From Vitrella brassicaformis CCMP3155 (lineage: Eukaryota; Protista; Chromerida), in NCBI GenBank assembly GCA_001179505.1, contig CDMY01000491.1:2881-66880 (forward strand): a stretch of DNA of 64,000 bases, given 5' to 3'. The notes below the pieces were generated by a model. The model saw only the letters and a list, made by a program, of their open reading frames with translations, was not told the DNA's origin and ran no database searches. Numbering within the stretch: position 1 is the stretch's first letter; every line of letters starts with the position of its first letter. The position numbers and the translations under genes were made by a program. Shown here piece by piece: positions 33,419 to 53,073 of this stretch.

Positions 33419-35904
33419 CTAGAGAAGGGCGGGAGAGTTCACATCATCGGCTGAAGTGTCCTCGGCGAGACACCCTGAATCTCCTCGACGAGACATCCTG
33501 TCATCTCTTCGCTTCGTTGGTGGCAGGCTGATAACATACACGCCCCTGCCCTTCTCTAATGGCCGTGATTTCGACATCGTTATGGGAGATTGCTCCGTTA
33601 GAACGAGCATTGACGGGACGAAACGTGTGGTCGTACCGTCTCCAGCAGGCAACACAGGGATGGCTTGTTCGTCTGTCTCTTCCGGGACGGGCCGCTCGAA
33701 CAGCCACGAAAGGGCTGATTCCTCTGGATAGACCGTCGACAGCCGCTCACTGGTTTCGACAGTTTCCTTCCTGCCCTTCCTCTTTTCTTTTATCTTCAAG
33801 TCCACCACGCCTGGTGGCGATGGTAAGGGACGAAGAGGGATGCGCTTCAACGGCCGAGACGGGCGGGAAAGGCGGATGATATGCGTTCTTTTCTTGCACT
33901 CATGTGCGAAAGGTCCCATTCTCGAGTAGGTGAACTGCAGCACAGCCCGAGAGGTCCCCTCGGTGGCCGCTTTGCCACTTCAGTGTTGTTCCCATGCTTC
34001 ATCAGGTACACCGGGACGAGGGGGCTCGTGGCTTGCAGAAAGAAGGCAGGGAACACGATAGGAGCAGCTGAAACCGTTTGGAAACACGACGTATCGTTTT
34101 TCCAGATGCAGTAGAAACGCAGGAGCCAGAGGAGGTGCAGCAAGACCATGGCTATACCGACTGCGCCAACAAGCATTGGAATGGCACTGTGGCTCCTTGG
34201 GTCCTTGCGGAACACAGCTGAAGAAGCAGAAGACACCAAGGAAGATGAAATCGCCTCAGGCACGGTGTCTTCATACCTGGTAGTGCTTCTCTCCGCAGCG
34301 GCCATCCACATGCGATCTTCTTTGACATCAAGATAAGACCGTCGTTCCTGTGTGTGACCCGAATCCCCTGTGGTGTGGCCTCATTGCCTTCATCTGTGTC
34401 AGCGATTGCTGTGCTCCATCCCTTAAGAGAGCACAAGGAGGTCTTAATATCGTATATCACCGCTCCGCATCTCCCATCGCGCATGCACCACTGATTACAC
34501 TGCGTGAGCGTGTCGGCGTCGTTGGACCACAGGGTACCGCCGCGGGAGAGGAAGGAGAGGTCTCTCTCCTCAGCAAGACACCAACGGACTGGAACGATCA
34601 TGAGAGAGAGAGATACGAGAGACGAAGGGAGGAAGAAAGGAAGGAAAGAGCAATGAGGGGCTTACCACAGTATCTTGGTCCGGAAGTGCCGTTGGGGTGT
34701 CGCACCTTTGCGTCTTCAACATGTGAGAATATCTTGCACTCGTGAGGCTCTGTGAAGGAGAAATGGCGGCATTGAGGGTGAGCCTGGCAGGTCCGCTGGC
34801 AGTCCGTGGGCGACGATATTGGGAAGGAGGGATAGTCCAGGTGACCCAGTACAGGATGGGTTCGAGGTACAGTCAACTCGCCATCTGGCGAAGGCTGGTA
34901 ACGAATCGACCTCTCGTGGCAGAATATCTGGCCTGCAGAAGGGCTGAAATCCCGCAGACCGTCCCAAAATGCACGGTCTTTCTACCGTATGGGTCTGGTA
35001 GTGTGGTAACATCTGAGTGCATCAGCGCAATCGTCAGCCGGCCATCGTTTTGCTCTACTGCCGTCTTCCTAAAGTCGCTCCGACTGAGAAGGAATGAGGA
35101 TTCAAGCAGCACCCAGTCGCCACCCTCCCACGATTCTAGAAGTCTGCCACTCTCAGAGAAATCCTCCTCGTAGAGAGGTATGAACTGTCGCGTATCGTGT
35201 TCATAGGAGGAAACTCGCACCCAATCGAATTCTGCCTTTCCAGGCAGACATCTTTCGTCGAATGACCCTCCCCAATCCTCGATATAGGGGTGGACTGCCC
35301 ATACGGACTGCTGCACTTCCATTGGCTTGGAGGGGATCCTCACGCTTTTATCAGCACTCGACACATATCTGGATTCAAAAAGCCGGAGACCGTGTGTCGT
35401 TGCCGTCGATGGCACTGCTTGAACTAACCTGATTTCGTTGCCGTCGATGAGCCATTTGACATAGTCTGGCGTCCAGTCGATGGCGAATGTGTGATACTTC
35501 TCGGCGAACGACTTTTCATCGGGGCTGCCGTGCAGCTGTTGAGAAAATATTCGGTTGCCGGCTTCACCTCCGATGATATTGCTTTGAAAATGGTACGCCT
35601 CGTCCTTTCCGAGAACCTCTATGTCGATCTCTTGCCACTCATTGTCGTCTTCCTCACTTTTTCTCTTATACAGAAAGAATGACACCACCACGCCACTACA
35701 GTTGATGGCGCGAAACCGCGACTCGAATCGACCGTACAGGTAGACGTCCTTGGATATTGCCCCTCCGCCCTGCAGGCGTTTCTGACAGCCGCCCCACCTC
35801 CCGTCGAAAATCAAGCCCCCATCCTCAGCAGCAGAAGGGCACTGAGAAGCGACCAACGTCACGCACAAGGCCTCCAACCACACACATTTCACCAGCCGAC
35901 CCAT
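33419..35904 (-). CDS. Type I membrane protein: GH16 glucanase + 2 PAN/Apple domains + TM helix + cytosolic tail
   Basis: Signal MGRLVKCVWLEALCVTLVASQC; YLYGRFESRFRA...GVVVSFFLY..WQEIDIEVLG (ExDxE); HTFAIDWTPDYVKWLIDG; Apple-type CQRTCQAHPQCRHFSF...C...SGPRYC and WCMRDGRCGAVIY...CSLK; TM IPMLVGAVGIAMVLLHLLWLLRFY. Confidence 0.85.
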
Positions 35905-36129
35905 GGGGATCTCCTCGGCTCCCAAACAAAGAAAGTACTGCGTATTTTGTCTGGACTCGAGGTCAGACGCACTGGTTGTTCTATCAAAAGAACATAATAA
36001 TGAGCTGCAGCACAGTTTTATGAGAAGCAGGAGCAGCACAGCCACGATTCGGAAGCGAACGATGTATTGTGAATCGGTTCACTGTGTTTCCTGAGCGTCT
36101 CCTAGTCAAATCCTAGCTGGAAGGACTGA

Positions 36130-42307: not shown

Positions 42308-44017
42308 TCAGTTGATGCCCAGCGACACCCACTGCTGGCCTGTCTGGCCGGTGACGTAGCCCAGCCGGCCCCACTGGAACTGGCAGTCGTCATTGCCCTC
42401 CTCGTTGTTGAAGCCCTTGACCACCTCCAGCCCGTGTTGCCGCACCTCATCCAGCCGGGCGCGATGCACCACCTCGCGGAACCCCAGCCGCCTGTGTGTG
42501 TGGCGCTGCCCCGCGTCGACAGCGAAGCACTGCAGCTGCGGCACACGCACCATCTGTCCGTCCGGCCCCCGGCTCCACCCGCCCACCACCTCCCGATTGC
42601 TGACCGTCTTGGTCGCCGCCCACTCGACGAAATGCTCGACGGCCCCCCGGACGCGCCGCTTGATTGCCGATGCGTTTGTGAGGTAGCTGTCGATGGCGGT
42701 GAGTGCGGCGGGTGGGTCGTGCAGGAAGGCCCCGATCTTCCATGCGATGGCGGCGGCCTCCTGTGGTCCGAATGAGAGTGGGGAGAGGGAGGGCGGGTGG
42801 GGGAGGGAGGCGTCCTCGTCGTTGTGGTCCACCAGAGGCAGAATGCGCGTCATGAGGATGTCGGCGTCGCGTTGGGGGCCGAGGGCGGCGTTGATGGCGT
42901 CCATGACCACGAAGGGCAGCTCGTTGAGTACAGCCACGTACTCCTTCAGCACCAGCTCACGCCGCTTGCGCTGAAGGGGTGTGTTGGTGGGAAGCACGTT
43001 TGTTGAGAGGTCGGCTCCCGCCCGCAGCAGGGACCGCACCATCAGCTTGCGGTTGCGAATCCGCTCAGCTGTCTCGTCCCGCATGTCGTCGCCGTCGTCG
43101 TTGTCGTTGTCGTTGTCGTCAAGCAGCTCTTCCAGTTGACTTGCGGCACCCCGGAGCGGCGGGGAAACACCCACCTGTGCATGGCTGATGTCAGCGGGAG
43201 TGGCGAGACGCTCGCACAGGTAGTCCACCACCCAGTGGCTTGACCAGGTCGTTATGCCGGCAGCATACCGCAGGATAAGACGCAAATTGGCCGCCGGTAT
43301 GGGGTTGCCGTGCTGCACCAGGGTGTCCATGTACTCGTACGTGAAGGCCTTGGACAGAAGGGGTCGTGAAGTAGCTGCGAGGAGCACCGCAACGCCGCTC
43401 TTCGACGGATCATGCTGCAGCAGCCGGCGGGCCACACCGATGAGGGCATCGCCATAGGCTTGCGATGGCCGGAGGGGAGAGAAGCCGTCAAGGGGCAAAG
43501 ATATATGGTTGACCTGATTTGTGGCCAACAGCACCTCCACTGCGTCAATGTTGCCCGTCTCGGACGCCACACGGATCGGCCGCATGCCCTCGTGATCTAG
43601 CTCGTGATCGGGATAATGGAAGTTGACGTTGGCCCCGCAGCTGATGAGCGCCTGAAGTATGTCCCGCTGCAGTTGGCGTGACGACCACGGTGTGAGCAGC
43701 AGGGGCGTCTTGAGGTCCGAATCCATCCGCCACACAGAGGGGACGCTGCCGGTCGGGTCGTCAATCGCCAGCGACAGCAGCGGCACCCACTTGGTGCGTC
43801 GATGGACTCCAGATGCCTTCTCGCGGAAGCCGACCAGCGCGTCGGGATTGGCTCCTTTGGTCTGGATGAGTCGTGTGGCGATGGCGGGCGTTAGCTCACG
43901 GCGCAGAATACGGTGGACGAGCCGCTTGGTGGCGGGGCCGGTGTCTGTCTGCCAGCAGAGGTCGATGCCGTCACTCGGTAGAGGCAGCTGGGCGGTGCTA
44001 TCGGGCTGATCGGACAT
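42308..44017 (-). CDS. Intronless ankyrin-repeat protein of the expanded Vitrella-type family
   Basis: 569-aa ORF; LIQTKGANPD, ILQALISCGANVN, PIRVASETGNIDAVEVLL; characteristic tail AINAAL.PQR...LSFGPQEAAAIAWKIGAF...KGFN..GNDDCQFQWG (family recognised from memory). Confidence 0.75.
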   Translation of the reverse strand: MSDQPDSTAQLPLPSDGIDLCWQTDTGPATKRLVHRILRRELTPAIATRLIQTKGANPDALVGFREKASGVHRRTKWVPLLSLAIDDPTGSVPSVWRMDSDLKTPLLLTPWSSRQLQRDILQALISCGANVNFHYPDHELDHEGMRPIRVASETGNIDAVEVLLATNQVNHISLPLDGFSPLRPSQAYGDALIGVARRLLQHDPSKSGVAVLLAATSRPLLSKAFTYEYMDTLVQHGNPIPAANLRLILRYAAGITTWSSHWVVDYLCERLATPADISHAQVGVSPPLRGAASQLEELLDDNDNDNDDGDDMRDETAERIRNRKLMVRSLLRAGADLSTNVLPTNTPLQRKRRELVLKEYVAVLNELPFVVMDAINAALGPQRDADILMTRILPLVDHNDEDASLPHPPSLSPLSFGPQEAAAIAWKIGAFLHDPPAALTAIDSYLTNASAIKRRVRGAVEHFVEWAATKTVSNREVVGGWSRGPDGQMVRVPQLQCFAVDAGQRHTHRRLGFREVVHRARLDEVRQHGLEVVKGFNNEEGNDDCQFQWGRLGYVTGQTGQQWVSLGIN

Positions 44018-46200: not shown

Positions 46201-46249
46201 TAACTTCAGTGCCGAATCACCCTACAAGCGCCACATTGCCAGAAAACTG

Positions 46250-46590
46250 ACCCAGGGGGGTGGGAAACTGTGTTCTGTGCGGAAAACCGGGGCCCCATGC
46301 GGAAAACTGAGCCAGGGGCCCGGAAAACTGGTGATCTGCAGTGGAAAACTGACCACCTGCGTGGAAAACTGGCGCTCCCACGTGGAAAACTGGCCATCCG
46401 ACGTGGAAAACGGGTTCTCTGCCGCCTGTACCCAGTTTTCCATTGCCTGATGCCAGTTTTCCACTGCCTCTACCCAGTTTTCCAGTCTCTCCACCCAGTT
46501 TTCCATTGCCTGATGTCAGTTTCCAGTCAATGTGCCAGTTTTCCAATCGATGTGCCAGTTTTCCGCTGGATGTGCCAGTTTTCCAATGAA
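46250..46590. repeat. Two opposed arrays of a 9-10-bp core (GGAAAACTGG, then CCAGTTTTCC) at 20-21-bp period
   Basis: About 9 units at 46250-46410 and about 8 inverted units at 46430-46590, with variable spacers. Confidence 0.9.
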
Positions 46591-46999
46591 TGTGCCCTTA
46601 ACCCAAGAAACCCTGGACCCGATAAACCCTGCGACCCGAGAAACCCTGCTTCGGAAGGCTGTCGGCAAGATTCCTGACTCTCTGCTGTGTTCGGGTGTTC
46701 AGACAAGCTGTGTGCTTTTCGCGCTGTGGCCAGTTTTCCAGTAGATACACTCGAGATCTAACGCAGCACGCACCAGTCAATGCTTTCTGAAGTCAGAGAG
46801 AGAGTTGGAGAGAGCGCGGGCTGTACACTCGCGGTGTCCAAAGCTGCATGAGGTATCTACGGTCAATCGGTTGCTTCGTCTGGATGACTATTGTTTTGCT
46901 CTTGTCGTCAAGGAAGTAGACAGACAAGAGGGAAGGATTGTGAGGGTGCGGCATGTCGGCATGATGCATGTCGGCCGTGAGGAGCATCGCTCTCGAAGG

Positions 47000-48960
47000 A
47001 CGGCTCTCCTGATTCCCACAAATACCCTGACGCCCTCAAGCCAGTCAGGTGGGTTGACACACACACACACACGTGTGCGCAAGAGAGAGGATGACCTCTT
47101 CGCTTGCTCTTGCTCACCCTCTGCTGCCGCCGCCGACTACGCCAATCGATTCACACCGCATTCGCTGCCTCCGTCCGTCCCCACCCACCTGAAGATGCAG
47201 ATCGAAGGGCTCTGGACATCAGTCAAGCTCAAGGTGAACGCTGCAAAGGCCGCTCGTCTTGTCGAAGCATTTCGGCGCCTGCCAGCATATCAGCTCTTCG
47301 ATCAGGACAGCGACCCGCTCGCGATTCAGCAGGTGGGCACCTCGGAATGAGCCGGGGAGGACTTGGGTTGCCCATCGCTCATGTGTGTGCTGCAGGATGG
47401 CCGCGTGTCGGTCCTGGAGGTCTGGAAGTCGCCACAAGAGCTCTCCTCGGGCCGTGCCAATGTGCGCAGCACGTTTCTCTTCATGGGCGTTGACGAAGCA
47501 CGCACCCTCATCGTCCCCGAGCTCATTTACGAGGAGCTTGAGGCCGGTAGACCTGCAACACACACACACACACACACTCTCACACAAAAACCCCCCCCCA
47601 CACACAGACGCTGACTGTCCTCTCACCTGATGTCCATATGTGTCTTCACACAGGAGGCCGCGGTGTTGCGGTGTTCAACACGCCTGTCATCGTCTCAATC
47701 GAGTCGTCTGCCACGTCCAGTGACTGGAGCATCCTCACTCGCTTCCAGCTGCATGTCTTCAACCACGAGGGTAGCCTGAAGGGCGGCAAACACGCCGAGG
47801 TCGATTTCCTCGGCAAGAAGTTTGGCTCACAGCAGGACAAACAGGTGAGATTTGAAACGGACGAATGCACAGTTACTTTACCTGCGAAGCCATTGTGTGT
47901 TCAATGCAGCTCTTCTTGCGTGGGCAGCTGGGTGAGGGCGGCAATTTCCCGCCGGACAAGGAGCCTGAGGACGAGGCTCCGCATCATATGCAGGAGGCTG
48001 ACGACGAGCTCTTCGTCTCCATCCCGTGCGCCACTCACCGCAATGAGCTGTCATCTCTGCGCCGCTCGGCAGCGGAGTCCGAATGGGACACCGAGAGCCA
48101 GCCCATGCGGGATTACATCAGCAGGGTCAGTCGGCAATCAATGAACACACAGATAGCATCCCCTTGTGTGTCGGTCCCTTCCTGTCTTAGGTATTCTTCT
48201 ACCTGATGGATCACCACGAGAGTGGTTTTGAGCCTCCACAAGAGTGTTTCCACGCTGACGTCCTGGCCGACTGGTTCTTCAAGCCACTCAGGGAGATCCT
48301 CTCACTCGACGACCTGGAAAATTAGCCTGCGGGTGGATGTCAATGGCGCATCGATGTGATCTACCTGTTCTCTTGCAGAGCTCTTCCCTGATAAGGTGGC
48401 TGAGCTGAAGCAGCGTCAAAAAGACCGTGACGAACCGCTGGGTAATAGTGAGACAGACACAAGAGATTACGGCATATCTGTCTGCGTGTCTGTCTCACTC
48501 AGGCAAGCGGAAGTACACAGACGGCGATGACGACGACGACCGCGATGAGGACCACCTTCCCGACAGGGCAAATGGGGATGGGAGCGGTCCCGGCGGCATC
48601 GACAGGACGTCTACCAAGAAGACCAAGACAGAACATAAGCCAGCTGGGGAGCCGTCTGGTGCTCGTCGCCACTCACCTGCCGCTCACGATCTGATGATGG
48701 CGTCGCGTCGCACCACTGCATCTGCTGCAGGTAAGAAAGCTCACATTGAGGCGGCTCCGTTCATTCTTTCGCTATGCACAGGAGAGGTCGATGATGAGGT
48801 GACGGTTGAACAGAATGTGAAGTGCGCCGAGTGTGGTAAGGTGACACACGATTGAGATGCCGATGATGATTGACGGTGTGCCTTTGTGTGTGCAGGCTGC
48901 ACACTGCTTGTTTCTTCTGAAGCCGTCTGTTTGCCCCTTCTTGATTTTGACACGTTCTGA
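47000..48960 (+). pseudogene. Multi-exon hypothetical gene convergent with the transposase; in-frame TAG near 48323; start uncertain
   Basis: Consistent GT-AG splicing gives ..LRSTFLFMGVDEARTLIVPELIY..FFYLMDHHESG..LDDLEN*PAELFPDK..acidic DGDDDDDRDED..KCAECGC..*. Confidence 0.5.
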
Positions 48961-49096: not shown

Positions 49097-52000
49097 TCAT
49101 TTGCCAGAGAAGAAGCGATTTACACACTGCCAGAAGTACCCTTTGCCGTTGGCGTAAAGGTCCTCCTCCTCCTCGGATGAATGCCGTTTGTATGTGCGCG
49201 GTGCGAGGTAGGATGTGCTGTCATGGAAGCCCAGGTACTGCACCCGGATCATGTGCTGAAGTGTCTGGCCGGTGCTCTCGTAGCCCGGCATCAACTCACC
49301 TGACACACCACAAACAGACATCCGTGGAATCGCCATATCAACACTGAATGCCTCCGTATACCTGCGTCGTCCGTCCGGCCGCCCCCGTGGCTGCTGCAGT
49401 GTCTGAATGCGTGCTTCAGCTCTTTGTGTTTGGCCTCGCTGGCCTGAGTGATGAATGGTGCAAGAGAGCCGTGGCAGATGAGGGCGAATCTGCCGTGTTC
49501 CACGATCCAGTGGAGGCAGGTGGGGAGGTCGGGCTTGTCGACCCCTGCACGGAAGAGGCGGCACCACCTCTCCATGAAGGCGACAGCCGAGACGCCGTAC
49601 TGTTCAACGCGGCTCTGAGAGGGCTTGATGCTCAGCAGCGTGATGGCCATGCCTCTGAAGTAGAGCAGCAGGGCATGCAAATCCCACCCTGCACACAAAG
49701 AGGTGTCGACGTGCATGCAGTGTAATGATTGACTGGCCTGGGCGGACATGGCCTCGAAGGTGCGGGTGGGGGGGTTGATGTCGCCAGTGAGGTTCATACG
49801 CCGGATGCGTGACATGTCCATCCAGCTGTCGGTCGGCAGCGAGCACAGGTGGCATCGATGCGTCGCCGATCCGCCACTCAGGCCCAGCACCAGTGGGAAG
49901 GATGCACCGTCTGCACCAACGCGTACGCTGGCTGGCTTCTTGAGGTGTGTGTCGATGAATGTGAGGGTGGCAGGCTTGATCTCGGCCTTGTGGGTGTCGA
50001 TGAACTCGCGCAGACGCTTGGCGACGTCAGGACGCACATTCAATCGTCCTGAAAGAGAAAATGCAATGAGCAGACGTTGTGCAATACGTGTGAAGCCCAA
50101 ATGTGAGAGACGGTACCGTGAATCGTCGAGCGGCGCTGCCTGCCCTCCGCGTCGGCCACCCACACCTCAATGCCAAGCTCAAGACGCTCCTTGATTTTGT
50201 CCACCACTTGAGTGAAGATGTGTTGGAAGGCGTCCCACGACTCACGCCCTGTAAAACAGCACATATAGAGGTCCATCGCACTTTCACAGTGAATCATACA
50301 CTCACCGCGGAACACACACACTGGATGCAGCCAGCGAGGCTCGAACAGCTGCTCATTGCTTAGGCCGCCCAGGCGAACGTAGAGTGCGACGGCTTTGTTG
50401 TCCTCTGTGACAGACATCCGTGTCAGACCGGTCCCATCGAAGAGCAGGTCCATTTCGATGTGGTTCACACCCGGCTTGATGCTGGTGGGTGCGGCGTATG
50501 CAGGCAGCTTGAGGAAGGCGCGCAGAATTGGGCCGATCTCGGCGGCCATGCACGTGACCGTGCGGCCGTCAACGTCAGCGTCAACCCGATACAACTCAAT
50601 GCCGATCTCGCGGTCCAGCTGCTTGATGTCGGTCTTCACGCTGTCGAGTGGCTTGAGTATGCGTGGGACGAACGCCGATATCGTGCGGCCGTCAGAGGTC
50701 TCCGTGCGGTCGAGAAGGATGCCGCCCCGCATGCGGTATCGCCCACCGTGCTCCGTCTCTCGACAGCTCATGAACGGCGACAGGGCACCGTACTTGGCGT
50801 CTGAGATGCAGGCGATCAGCTTAATGGCGGTGGACATGCGGATGGGGTAGAGGTCCTCAACACACTGGCAGACGTGCTTCTGCACCCGCACGGCAACCTC
50901 GCGGCCGCATGCATCGGCGAGGAAGTTGATGAGGGTGTACCCATCGCCAAACACGAACTGCAACAGCACAGACAAACGATGAGAGGAAGAGATATCCGCT
51001 GCCTCCCTATGTATGTCTCTCACCTCGCCAGGGCGAAACAGGCGTGTGTCGAAGATGGCCTGCTTCAGTAGCTTCATGGCGAATTGGAGGCGGATGGGCA
51101 GGTCGGCGAACTTCTCCACACGGACCGTGCTGACTGGCGCTTCCTCACTGTCTGTCTCGCTGGGCTCACTGAGGTCACGGCTGGAAGGGAGAGGGGCAAT
51201 CAGGCAGAGGATCTGACGCAGCTGGCCGTAGAGCCGTTCTGTCGTGCGGGGCGATGTGGGCTCCTGGGTGCGCGAGCGTAGACGGATGTCCTCTCCCGCC
51301 TCGATCTTGGCCGCCCTCTCTTCTCCGTCACGGCCACTCCGCTTGAGTGCACGCAGCCAGAGGGCGACGTAGTGGCAACCGCAGGGGATGGCTTTGGGTT
51401 TCCTGAGTTGCAGCCGTTTCTCGAGCCAGGTCTCGAAGAAGAGATAGTCTGGTGCGGATGGCTCCTGGCCGAGAAGCCGCAGGCCCTCCTGCATCGGCCA
51501 CATGGCGCATCTCGAATGCCCGCAGCTCATCCTCCAGATTGCTGGTGGCAGACAGCCTGACGATGGAGTCGTCCGTCTCGGCGCACGATGATGCCAGCAG
51601 GGCGTCGATGGCGGACACACCGGGCTTGATGGTCACTCGGGCGACCTTCAGGAGTCGGTTGAGGAGGTCACTGGTGCTGTTGGGCATGGCGGAGAGATCG
51701 CGGGGTTGTGTGTTCTTGCCGGCCCTCTGGTTTGCGGCGGTGCTCCGGGATGCGATGACCGCTGCCCGCTCCTGAGCGGCACTCTCGACTGCCAAGACGC
51801 GGCGGGTGTGGTAGCGTGGCTGAGGTTGGGCGGTGGCGGCTGCAGCGGCAGGGGATGCAGGGGCCGGCTCGTCGCCATCGATGTGGCGGGCTTCTTCCGC
51901 CAGTCGCCTGCGAAAGGCGGATGACGACAGCTCTGACAAAGAGCAGAACAGATGGAGATTGGTGTACGTTTATCCATTCTTTCGCATCTGGCTGGTCTTC

Positions 52001-52302
52001 TCACCCTCCTCTTCGATGGACAGGTGCATGCTGCCTTCTGGCTCGCCAGCAGATCCATCGCCGTCCTCGCCATCCCAGCCACCTCCCTCCCCATCGCCCC
52101 CCTCCATCTGGGCATCATCGCCATCTGCCTCGCCCCCCTCCATGATCTTGTCCTCGGCATCTCCATGGTGGTCAAGGTCGTCGTCCTGCTGCTCGTCTTG
52201 CTGCTCGCCCTCCCCGCTGTCGGTGCGGCGCTTCTTGGGGGGGTGGGCGTTCTGACCCTTGGGAAACATCCCGGTGTTCTTTTGCACTTTGGTGCGGCCC
52301 AT
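49097..52302 (-). mobile_element. RAG1-like/Transib-superfamily DDE transposase, spliced, with one apparent frameshift near 51500
   Basis: D1 LLFDGTG (50436-38); KAVALY..PVCVFRGRES; D2 VGADG (49909-11); GLSGGSATHRCHLC (CxxC 49843-54); EQY..AF..W..LF; LHWIVEHG (H-x4-H); GSL..TQASEAKHK (E 49435-37); introns at 51933-52004, ~50250-50310, ~50050-50117 and ~49300-49360. Confidence 0.85.
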
Positions 52303-52486
52303 TGTGGTTGAAGAAGGAGGGATGAGTTGGAGAACTGTAAATGCGGAGAGGTCGAGGTCCCCATTGCAGAAGCCATGAGGCAGCGACACTTGAAGGCAGG
52401 CAAGAGAGAGCCTCTGCGGAAGCAGTGGGGGCGGGAGGGGGCTGATTGATGAGTTGGCTTGGTTGTTCGGACCGGTTGGCGATGTC

Positions 52487-53073
52487 GGCCCGTCTCTTTG
52501 TGTGGTGATTGCCTGTCACCCTCTGAGTGTTTCTGCCGGGCGCTTTGTGGATTGGCGGTCAGGGTGGAGAGAAACGAGTGATCGGTCGTGTGTATCCGCC
52601 AGGCAATCGGTAATAACTCGGTGAGGAAGTCGAGCAGCGGCCCGTCTCTTTGTGTGGTGATTGCTGTCACCCTCTGAGTGTTTCTGCCGGGCGGTTTGTG
52701 GATTGGCGGTCAGGGTGGAGAGAAACGAGTGATCGGTCATGTACTTCGTGTCGATCAATCACTAATAACTCCATGAGGTGAGCACCAATCGGCACGCCCC
52801 TTTGTCAGGGTGTTCAGCAGAGACACCCCGTAATTTGCACCCGACGGATTTTTGATTGCGTGTCTCGTTGCAGAGATACGACGCCAACAAGCCATCGGGT
52901 ACATGGGATTTCTCAGGAAATCGTTAATAACTCTTCACGGTTGATGGCTACGGGGCTCATTTTTGGTGAGTGTGATGCTGTTGACATGCTTGACATTTCC
53001 ACCCGAGGGATTTTTGATTTATGGTCTGGGTGCAGAGATATGGCACACCCCCATACAAATCTCCCCCAAAGTG
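52487..53073. repeat. Subterminal direct repeats upstream of the transposase plus a candidate terminus (minus strand begins CACTTTGGGGG at 53073)
   Basis: ~105-bp repeat at 52487-52590 and 52638-52742; CACCCGA.GGATTTTTGATT at 52838 and 53000. Confidence 0.6.

Follow-up and report, generated by a model that had tools for sequence, protein, structure and literature searches.

Does the genome of the chromerid Vitrella brassicaformis CCMP3155 hold a relative of RAG1? The origin of RAG1 has been traced through Transib-type transposases, and a gene on the minus strand of contig CDMY01000491.1 raises the question of whether such a transposase is present in a protist. The gene lies within a stretch of 64,000 nucleotides (nt), hereafter the window, in which a first-pass annotation had read it as a RAG1-like transposase. 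The answer that we favor, with a probability of about 0.6, is that the locus represents a very divergent DDE transposase of the Transib superfamily in the broad sense, that is, a member of the RAG1/Transib/Chapaev clade of the CACTA-Mirage-Chapaev-Transib group, with a broken frame and either disabled or retained by the host. The part of the annotation that pointed to a DDE transposase of this clade thus stands as the most likely reading, whereas the part that made it a RAG1-like element does not, and the locus is not a RAG1L/RAG2L element.

Contigs assembled from public runs X1-X6 were aligned to the window. Runs X2, X3 and X4 give a single unspliced contig of 5621 nt, which is identical to the window, and these runs behave as DNA. 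The contigs from X5, X6 and, at the 3' end, X1 skip five stretches exactly, and the locus is thus a nuclear gene that is transcribed and spliced, running from an ATG at 52302 to a stop at 49097-49099. All five introns are GT-AG introns in phase 1; the annotation had rightly seen a spliced gene with GT-AG introns but had counted only four. Intron 1 is left unspliced in one X6 contig. A minor GC-AG joint inside exon 5, with a side of 27 nt, has a depth of 19 in X5, compared to 60-105 for the main form, and its use would shift the frame ahead of the last two catalytic-half motifs, HxxxxH and the glutamate. The gene matches its neighbors both in codon use, with a G+C content at third codon positions of 0.77 (0.74-0.80 in the neighbors), and in intron size, 57-72 nt (51-107 nt in the neighbors).

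Exon 2 contains a genuine +1 frame break near 51500, which is present in both the DNA contigs (X2-X4) and the RNA contig (X5). When codon log-odds are trained on the exons farther down the gene, coding potential passes from the ATG frame to the +1 frame between ~51540 and ~51480; the ATG frame scores positive down to ~51520, and the +1 frame takes over only afterwards. The frameshift that had been proposed at ~51500, and suggested for a check against reads and RNA, is thereby confirmed. The first open reading frame (ORF1) has 300 codons, ends at 51328-51330 and carries a basic PPKKRR stretch in exon 1, a putative nuclear localization signal, followed by an acidic tract. The second frame (ORF2) has 717 codons, is open from ~51632 with its first ATG at 51501-51503, overlaps ORF1 by ~300 nt and contains all of the catalytic and zinc residues. 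Read through the single break, the product is ~959 amino acids (aa) long, in good agreement with the ~950 aa predicted earlier. A GT-AG interval of 130 nt at 51489-51618, the removal of which would restore a single frame of 916 aa, was considered as an intron and rejected; it is coding, because the X5 RNA is unspliced there, the DNA contigs agree and the codon statistics fit the ATG frame.

The motif strings quoted in the annotation are all present in the spliced protein, and the codons for the second catalytic aspartate (D2), the CxxC pair, the LH histidine, HxxxxH and the catalytic glutamate (E) are intact. A DGT motif, the candidate first aspartate (D1), lies 134 aa upstream of D2, and the sequence between the two contains a short segment that is duplicated (FIDTHK / FIDTHLK). 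An architecture with the motifs in this order (DG[TSM], D-x16-19-CxxC, LH, HxxxxH-x19-21-E) was recovered in a fraction of 5.5e-5 of 200,000 shuffles of the protein. The combination of CxxC and HxxxxH had been taken as a mark of the Transib/RAG/Chapaev elements; the motifs are present, but they are common to the whole CACTA-Mirage-Chapaev-Transib group. EnSpm/CACTA, Mirage, Chapaev, Transib, Plavaka, ESTA, Lanisha and RAG1 all have C(2)C and H(3-4)H in the interval from the second Asp to the Glu (PMC12730594), and C(2)C, LH and H(4)H have been termed characteristic of Chapaev (PMC4079192), which together with Chapaev3 was placed inside the Transib superfamily by Kapitonov and Koonin (PMC4411706). 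These motifs thus place the protein in the large group as a whole, and not with RAG1.

Comparators were obtained from metagenomes. The sequence of CthTransib_0091 is printed in the supplement of an earlier study (PMC9435367), and exact 30-36-mers from it and from another "bacterial" contig had no match in the genome-contig collection. The degenerate pattern GGD.KFL.L..GL recovered 88 metagenomic stretches, of which 25 run on into CxxC and clearly represent a CthTransib_0091-like family, with loci that include L003, L007, L010, L015, L031, L037, L039 and L062. One of these (L007:2870-5053) is a single open frame of 728 aa with a CCHC tail. The protein collection contains 98 relatives of this frame, and no Pfam domain is precomputed for any of them. 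An alignment of 60 sequences ties the family to RAG1, as judged by profile similarity: the best matches of the profile in the PDB are RAG1 chains (E 0.006 and 0.021, at the D2/ZnC2 and ZnH2/E regions), and PF12940 RAG1 is the commonest Pfam match among the members (8/60, best E 2e-4). The more distant locus L039 touches DUF1280 (E 0.007). The family is multi-copy with a single ORF (~700-728 aa) and a CCHC tail, of the same kind as the "bacterial" CthTransib_0091 (PMC9435367), and at least 17 near-identical copies of the transposase are present in assembly WLWD01, on contigs of up to 548 kb. The copy number and the large contigs suggest that the host is eukaryotic rather than bacterial.

The similarity of the spliced protein to this family is concentrated in two collinear blocks. 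A BLASTP comparison with four family ORFs aligned D2/CxxC with 14/37 identities (E 2e-4) and, collinear with it, a further stretch that spans HxxxxH/E (E 0.008). The Smith-Waterman score from D2 to the end of the protein was 68, as compared to 32 +/- 4.6 for 1000 shuffles (maximum 52; Gumbel p 2e-5), and for the whole core the p value was 2.5e-4. A search with a hidden Markov model (HMM) of the family, hmmsearch with all filters off, gave P 0.002 with both domains at homologous profile positions, and the exon-5 ORF ranked first among the 797 ORFs of at least 50 aa in the window. In a BLASTP comparison with the 98 members, 70 of the ~125 high-scoring segment pairs (HSPs) fell at query positions 650-700 and another 34 at 800-850.

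In the ESM Atlas, where language-model features of proteins are compared, the exon-5 ORF (49291-50163) is recognized well and has a coherent set of neighbors. Its top match scores 0.96, with 197 features in common, and the next scores 0.95, with 188; the latter is an arthropod cluster with RAG1_RNase_H in some of its members. RAG1 RNase H, ZnC2 or ZnH2 families occur in approximately 24 of the 100 clusters closest to the ORF, and DUF1280 occurs in others, with similarities to the RAG1-domain and DUF1280 clusters of 0.92-0.96; the level of 0.96 is reached by about one in 100 shuffled proteins. DUF1280 corresponds to the Chapaev transposase and groups with RAG1, with CACTA and Mirage grouping elsewhere (PMC3985635). 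The 526-aa ORF produced weak and mixed leads to Plavaka, RAG1 and CACTA.

Formal similarity to the protein (E 2e-4, p 2e-5) is confined to the CthTransib_0091-like Transibs, classified as "Subgroup I / bacterial-type" (Tao et al., 2022; PMC9435367). They have in common with it D2-x18-CxxC with G-L at +9/+10, P....W.DMS past CxxC, the LH motif and HxxxxH-x19-E, in which G occupies position +9 and F position +14. Unlike the gene in V. brassicaformis, they consist of a single ORF of ~700 aa with a terminal CCHC knuckle and have only 78 aa between D1 and D2, whereas our gene has five introns and an N-terminal part of 460 aa that is unmatched.

For the placement within the group, blocks were compared by eye to sequences printed in papers, with no statistical evaluation. 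The distance from D2 to the first Cys is 19 residues in this protein, in CthTransib_0091, in FcoRAG1L and in the Chapaev3 element Garfield_BM, and 18 in AanRAG1L. The distance from the second His to the Glu is 20 in this protein, CthTransib_0091 and FcoRAG1L, and 13-14 in Garfield_BM. Likewise, the D1 motif is DGT here, DG[TSML] in RAG1L/Transib and DSS in Garfield_BM. The segment from LH to H(4)H measures 55 aa here, ~140 aa in CthTransib_0091 and 108 aa in Garfield_BM, consistent with the earlier remark that the segment between LH and the QY helix is some 80 aa shorter than in RAG1. In the HxxxxH-to-E block, FcoRAG1L has H+8, G+9, L+11, F+14, E+20, A+21 and K+24 in common with the protein. 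The GL.GG.....C.LC block agrees at 7/14 residues with Garfield_BM, at 4/14 with CthTransib_0091 and at 5/14 with RAG1.

Several results weigh against the assignment to the Transib superfamily. The E-value of the exon-5 ORF against the family HMM is 0.17 when taken window-wide, and hhalign gave P 0.014 and a probability of 3%. Furthermore, the start of exon 3 (50850-50957, FVFGDGYTLINFLADACG...CQC) aligned to the D2 block of the family with an hhalign P of 0.009 and 11 BLASTP HSPs; because this region matches about equally well, single-block scores near 0.01 can arise by chance. The resemblance of FVFGDGYTLINFLADACG...CQC to the D2/C(2)C block is either itself due to chance or a trace of an old internal duplication. 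For the segment before D2, D1 included, p was ~0.1 and the best alignment does not pair the D1 motifs, so that the three upstream blocks aligned to RAG1 in the annotation (the DNA-binding region, the D600 block and the block before D2) are left with no statistical support, and the apparent similarity is limited to the C-terminal catalytic half. The locus was also chosen from a scan of very many windows, and the motif p of 5.5e-5 is not decisive alone. The placement within the group rests on the manual block comparisons, according to which the D2 block is slightly nearer to Chapaev3 and the D1 and E blocks are nearer to RAG1L/Transib.

The searches of curated models and databases were likewise blank. 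There was no Pfam match at E up to 10 for whole ORFs and clean exons in three rounds, no NCBIfam match for the pieces of the transposase gene and no match to the PDB with phmmer for four query pieces. A word-indexed search of 5.8 billion proteins was blank, and so was an exhaustive phmmer search of 1.84 billion representatives with the 526-aa ORF, for which the exon-5 ORF would have been a better query. Searches of metagenome and viral loci with transposase pieces were blank, and exact look-ups turned up no record of either of the two large ORFs. AlphaFold, run with no alignment on exon 5 and on a 462-aa piece, produced unusable models, with predicted local distance difference test (pLDDT) values of 37 and 34, and exon 3 alone gave only noise in the Atlas.

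One alternative hypothesis puts the protein outside Transib proper, in a different lineage of the CACTA-Mirage-Chapaev-Transib group, whether Chapaev-like, CACTA/Plavaka-like or new and from protists. Its C(2)C, LH and H(3-4)H motifs are common to all of these lineages (PMC12730594; PMC4079192), and CACTA/EnSpm, Mirage and Plavaka, which carry C(2)C and H(3-4)H in the D2-to-E interval, are weak neighbors in the Atlas, with Plavaka and Transposase_21 among the weaker matches. With Chapaev/Chapaev3 (DUF1280; Garfield_BM, PMC4079192), the protein has in common C(2)C, LH, H(4)H, the D-to-C spacing and the GL.GG....C.LC block, which is closer to that of Garfield_BM than to that of CthTransib_0091 in the manual comparison; the DUF1280 clusters are among its best Atlas matches and score as high as the RAG1 clusters, and its short insert is nearer in length to that of Chapaev3 than to that of CthTransib_0091. 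On the other hand, the DGT motif of D1 and an H-to-E spacing of 20 residues with E-x3-K agree with RAG1L/Transib and are unlike Garfield_BM, which also has a Cys-rich N-terminal zinc finger. The protein has no Cys-rich N terminus of the Chapa zinc finger type, no DUF1280 match in Pfam, and no Transposase_21, DUF1258 or Plavaka match. In CACTA, moreover, the histidine motif is H(3)H and D2 lies in DxPA. The formal statistics were all obtained against the RAG1-related family, and the sequence comparison for this hypothesis covered Chapaev3 (Garfield_BM). We consider this hypothesis rather unlikely; our reading places the protein in the Transib superfamily in the broad sense, at no finer level.

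It may also be asked whether the gene derives from a transposase at all. The blank searches, the low hhalign probability, the similar P of an unrelated region and the modest weight of the motif statistics after a scan of so many windows speak for an orphan host gene in which the motif pattern and the weak matches have come together by chance. Yet methods that are independent of one another, namely the Atlas similarity of 0.96, the BLASTP matches and the Smith-Waterman scores, agree on one family and on one pair of blocks, the HSPs pile up on homologous blocks across the 98 members, and the D-to-C and H-to-E spacings are identical. An orphan gene is therefore, in our opinion, improbable.

If the protein is a transposase of the Transib superfamily, the mechanism can be pictured from what is known of the family (Transib, RAG1). 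The three acidic residues on an RNase H-like fold would hold two metal ions, and the Cys2/His2 zinc site would brace the insertion domain. An intact enzyme would nick the transposon ends and make hairpins on the flanking DNA, and the excised element would be re-inserted with a short target duplication. The present copy is unable to move itself, because it has no terminal inverted repeats and its frame is split by the +1 break. Members of the group have terminal inverted repeats (5'-CA/CAC...) and target duplications of 2-5 bp (5 bp for Transib, 3-4 bp for Chapaev, 3 bp for CACTA). No credible pair of such repeats with target duplications was found within 40000-62000, either around the gene or around the two-gene block that includes its convergent neighbor; the best inverted-repeat pair (19/24) had no duplication, and the shuffled control was comparable. 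The copy is either a recently disabled member of its family or a host-retained (domesticated) gene, from which ORF2 may still be made.

Ciliates use domesticated transposases for programmed rearrangement, and by analogy ORF2 might be a domesticated Transib-type recombinase of a protist that acts on the host DNA, translated alone or by recoding at the +1 break. This idea draws on the intact catalytic and zinc residues, the host-like introns and codon use, and the steady transcription of the gene. We regard it as quite improbable, and the interest of the locus would be much higher if ORF2 were indeed a working host recombinase.

The reading suggested by the annotation, a RAG1-like (RAGL/TransibSU-type) gene that would itself be a protist relative of the RAG1L-RAG2L transposon, has some resemblances in its favor. 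The protein has the catalytic and zinc motifs in the same order and with the same spacings as RAG1/RAG1L (ProtoRAG, AanRAGL, FcoRAGL), and E-x3-K follows the catalytic Glu; in the manual comparison, the HxxxxH-to-E spacing with the subsequent E-x3-K matches FcoRAG1L at 8/25 positions, and the protein is similar to RAG1L in having a KPL motif and an A-I-K-L...S...Y stretch. The Atlas matches include RAG1-domain clusters, and a convergent neighbor gene is present. RAG1L proteins are described as having an N-terminal RING/Chapa zinc domain and a nonamer-binding GRP motif (PMC4411706; PMC9435367). Here, Cys is absent from the first 239 residues, so that there is no RING or Chapa zinc domain, and the GRP motif is absent throughout the protein. 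RAG1L also has a C-terminal CCHC tail, CTT1. The 67-aa tail of our protein (49100-49299) contains one Cys and no CCHC knuckle, whereas AanRAG1L, FcoRAG1L, CthTransib_0091 and L007 all end in one. The zinc-binding insert that houses the RAG2-binding helices (the alpha11-alpha12 region) is ~85 aa shorter here, below the size of a RAG2-binding insert, and neither a RAG2L partner nor RSS-like (recombination signal sequence) terminal repeats are present.

A RAG2-like gene would have six kelch blades and usually a PHD finger. The product of the convergent neighbor (47195-48325) is 276 aa long and has no match to kelch or PHD, only a weak one to COMMD9_HN (E 0.022), and there is no kelch ORF near the transposase gene. 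A two-gene organization of the ProtoRAG type was considered and rejected, the neighbor having no kelch/PHD signal. The profile check against RAG1 that had been proposed turned out negative, the Pfam models PF12940, PF26100, PF26101 and PF26104 giving no match for any piece at E up to 10. The suggestion that the protein is more RAG1L-like than a minimal Transib is thus not supported, with no RING/Chapa domain, GRP motif, CCHC tail or RAG2-like neighbor and with a shorter insert. Given these absences and the N-terminal alignments, which are not significant, a RAG1-like gene of the RAG1L-RAG2L kind is very improbable.

Published records already cover RAGL from a pelagophyte as well as Transibs from plants, fungi, ctenophores and "bacterial" contigs (PMC9435367). 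The "bacterial" contigs are regarded as doubtful, and few non-animal lineages are documented (PMC9435367). Our literature search found no report of Transib/RAGL from an alveolate, nor is an element of this kind mentioned in the papers on chromerid genomes. The protein is probably an unusually divergent and compact Transib-type transposase. A protist lineage so divergent that no curated model recognizes it would enlarge the known sequence space of the Transib superfamily, and a protein that combines a compact zinc-binding insert with an unrelated N-terminal half could help to root the tree of Transib, Chapaev and RAG1. The locus has no direct bearing on the evolution of RAG1-RAG2, because nothing RAG1L-specific or RAG2-like is present.

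Table 1. Exons, introns and putative catalytic and zinc-binding residues of the transposase gene, in window coordinates.
Feature	Positions	Strand	Remarks
Exon 1	52005..52302	-	Start codon 52300-52302; open frame, positive codon log-odds; intron 1 spliced in X5 contig
Intron 1	51933..52004	-	72 nt, GT-AG, phase 1; joint 51932/52005 in X5 RNA contig
Exon 2	51024..51932	-	Continuous in RNA; X5 contig with no gap or differing letter; contains +1 frame break
Intron 2	50958..51023	-	66 nt, GT-AG; joints in X5, X6
Exon 3	50306..50957	-	Candidate D1 (DGT motif) and ILKPL stretch
Candidate D1 (DGT)	50436-50438	-	Motif only; alignment not significant
Intron 3	50249..50305	-	57 nt, GT-AG; joints in X5, X6
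Exon 4	50117..50248	-	Predicted helix following third strand (RESWDAF...); RNA joints on both sides
Intron 4	50049..50116	-	68 nt, GT-AG; joints in X5, X6
Exon 5	49362..50048	-	Putative catalytic C-terminal half: D2, CxxC, LH, HxxxxH, E
D2	49909-49911	-	Exon 5; aligns to family members
CxxC	49843-49854	-	D2-to-first-Cys spacing 19 (D2-x18-CxxC)
Minor alternative GC-AG intron in exon 5	49655..49737	-	83 nt; joint in X5 only
LH histidine	49675-49677	-	Exon 5
HxxxxH	49495-49512	-	Exon 5
Catalytic E	49435-49437	-	20 residues past second His (HxxxxH-x19-E); aligns to family members
Intron 5	49300..49361	-	62 nt, GT-AG; joints in X1, X5, X6
Exon 6	49097..49299	-	Stop 49097-49099; 67-aa tail with no CCHC zinc knuckle

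The surroundings of the gene contain two arrays of repeats. Directly upstream of its 5' end, at 52486-53040, there are four tandem copies of a unit of 151-162 bp, the first two of which are 97-100% identical; the DNA unitig from X2-X4 stops inside this array, at ~52517. At 46230-46750, just upstream of the 5' end of the neighbor gene, a dense array of repeats of ~20-21 bp forms a large imperfect palindrome, with one arm (GGAAAACTG) at 46232-46414 and its complement (CAGTTTTCC) at 46435-46600, plus 46729. This array could be a promoter element or represent subterminal transposon-like repeats.

The neighbor gene is located on the plus strand at 47195-48960, has introns supported by RNA and encodes an ORF of 276 codons that ends at 48323. 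Past this ORF, the transcript has three more spliced introns (48442-48502, 48731-48781 and 48836-48895) and a second frame (+1) of 199 codons, and the neighbor may thus also have a frame break or a retained intron. The convergent transcripts of the two genes overlap at their 3' ends. Elsewhere the window contains genes of an ordinary eukaryotic kind, namely a CAP59-type mannosyltransferase (84-965, E 6e-33), a GH16 glycoside hydrolase (34876-36045, E 6e-27) and a weak ankyrin-repeat ORF (42311-44017).

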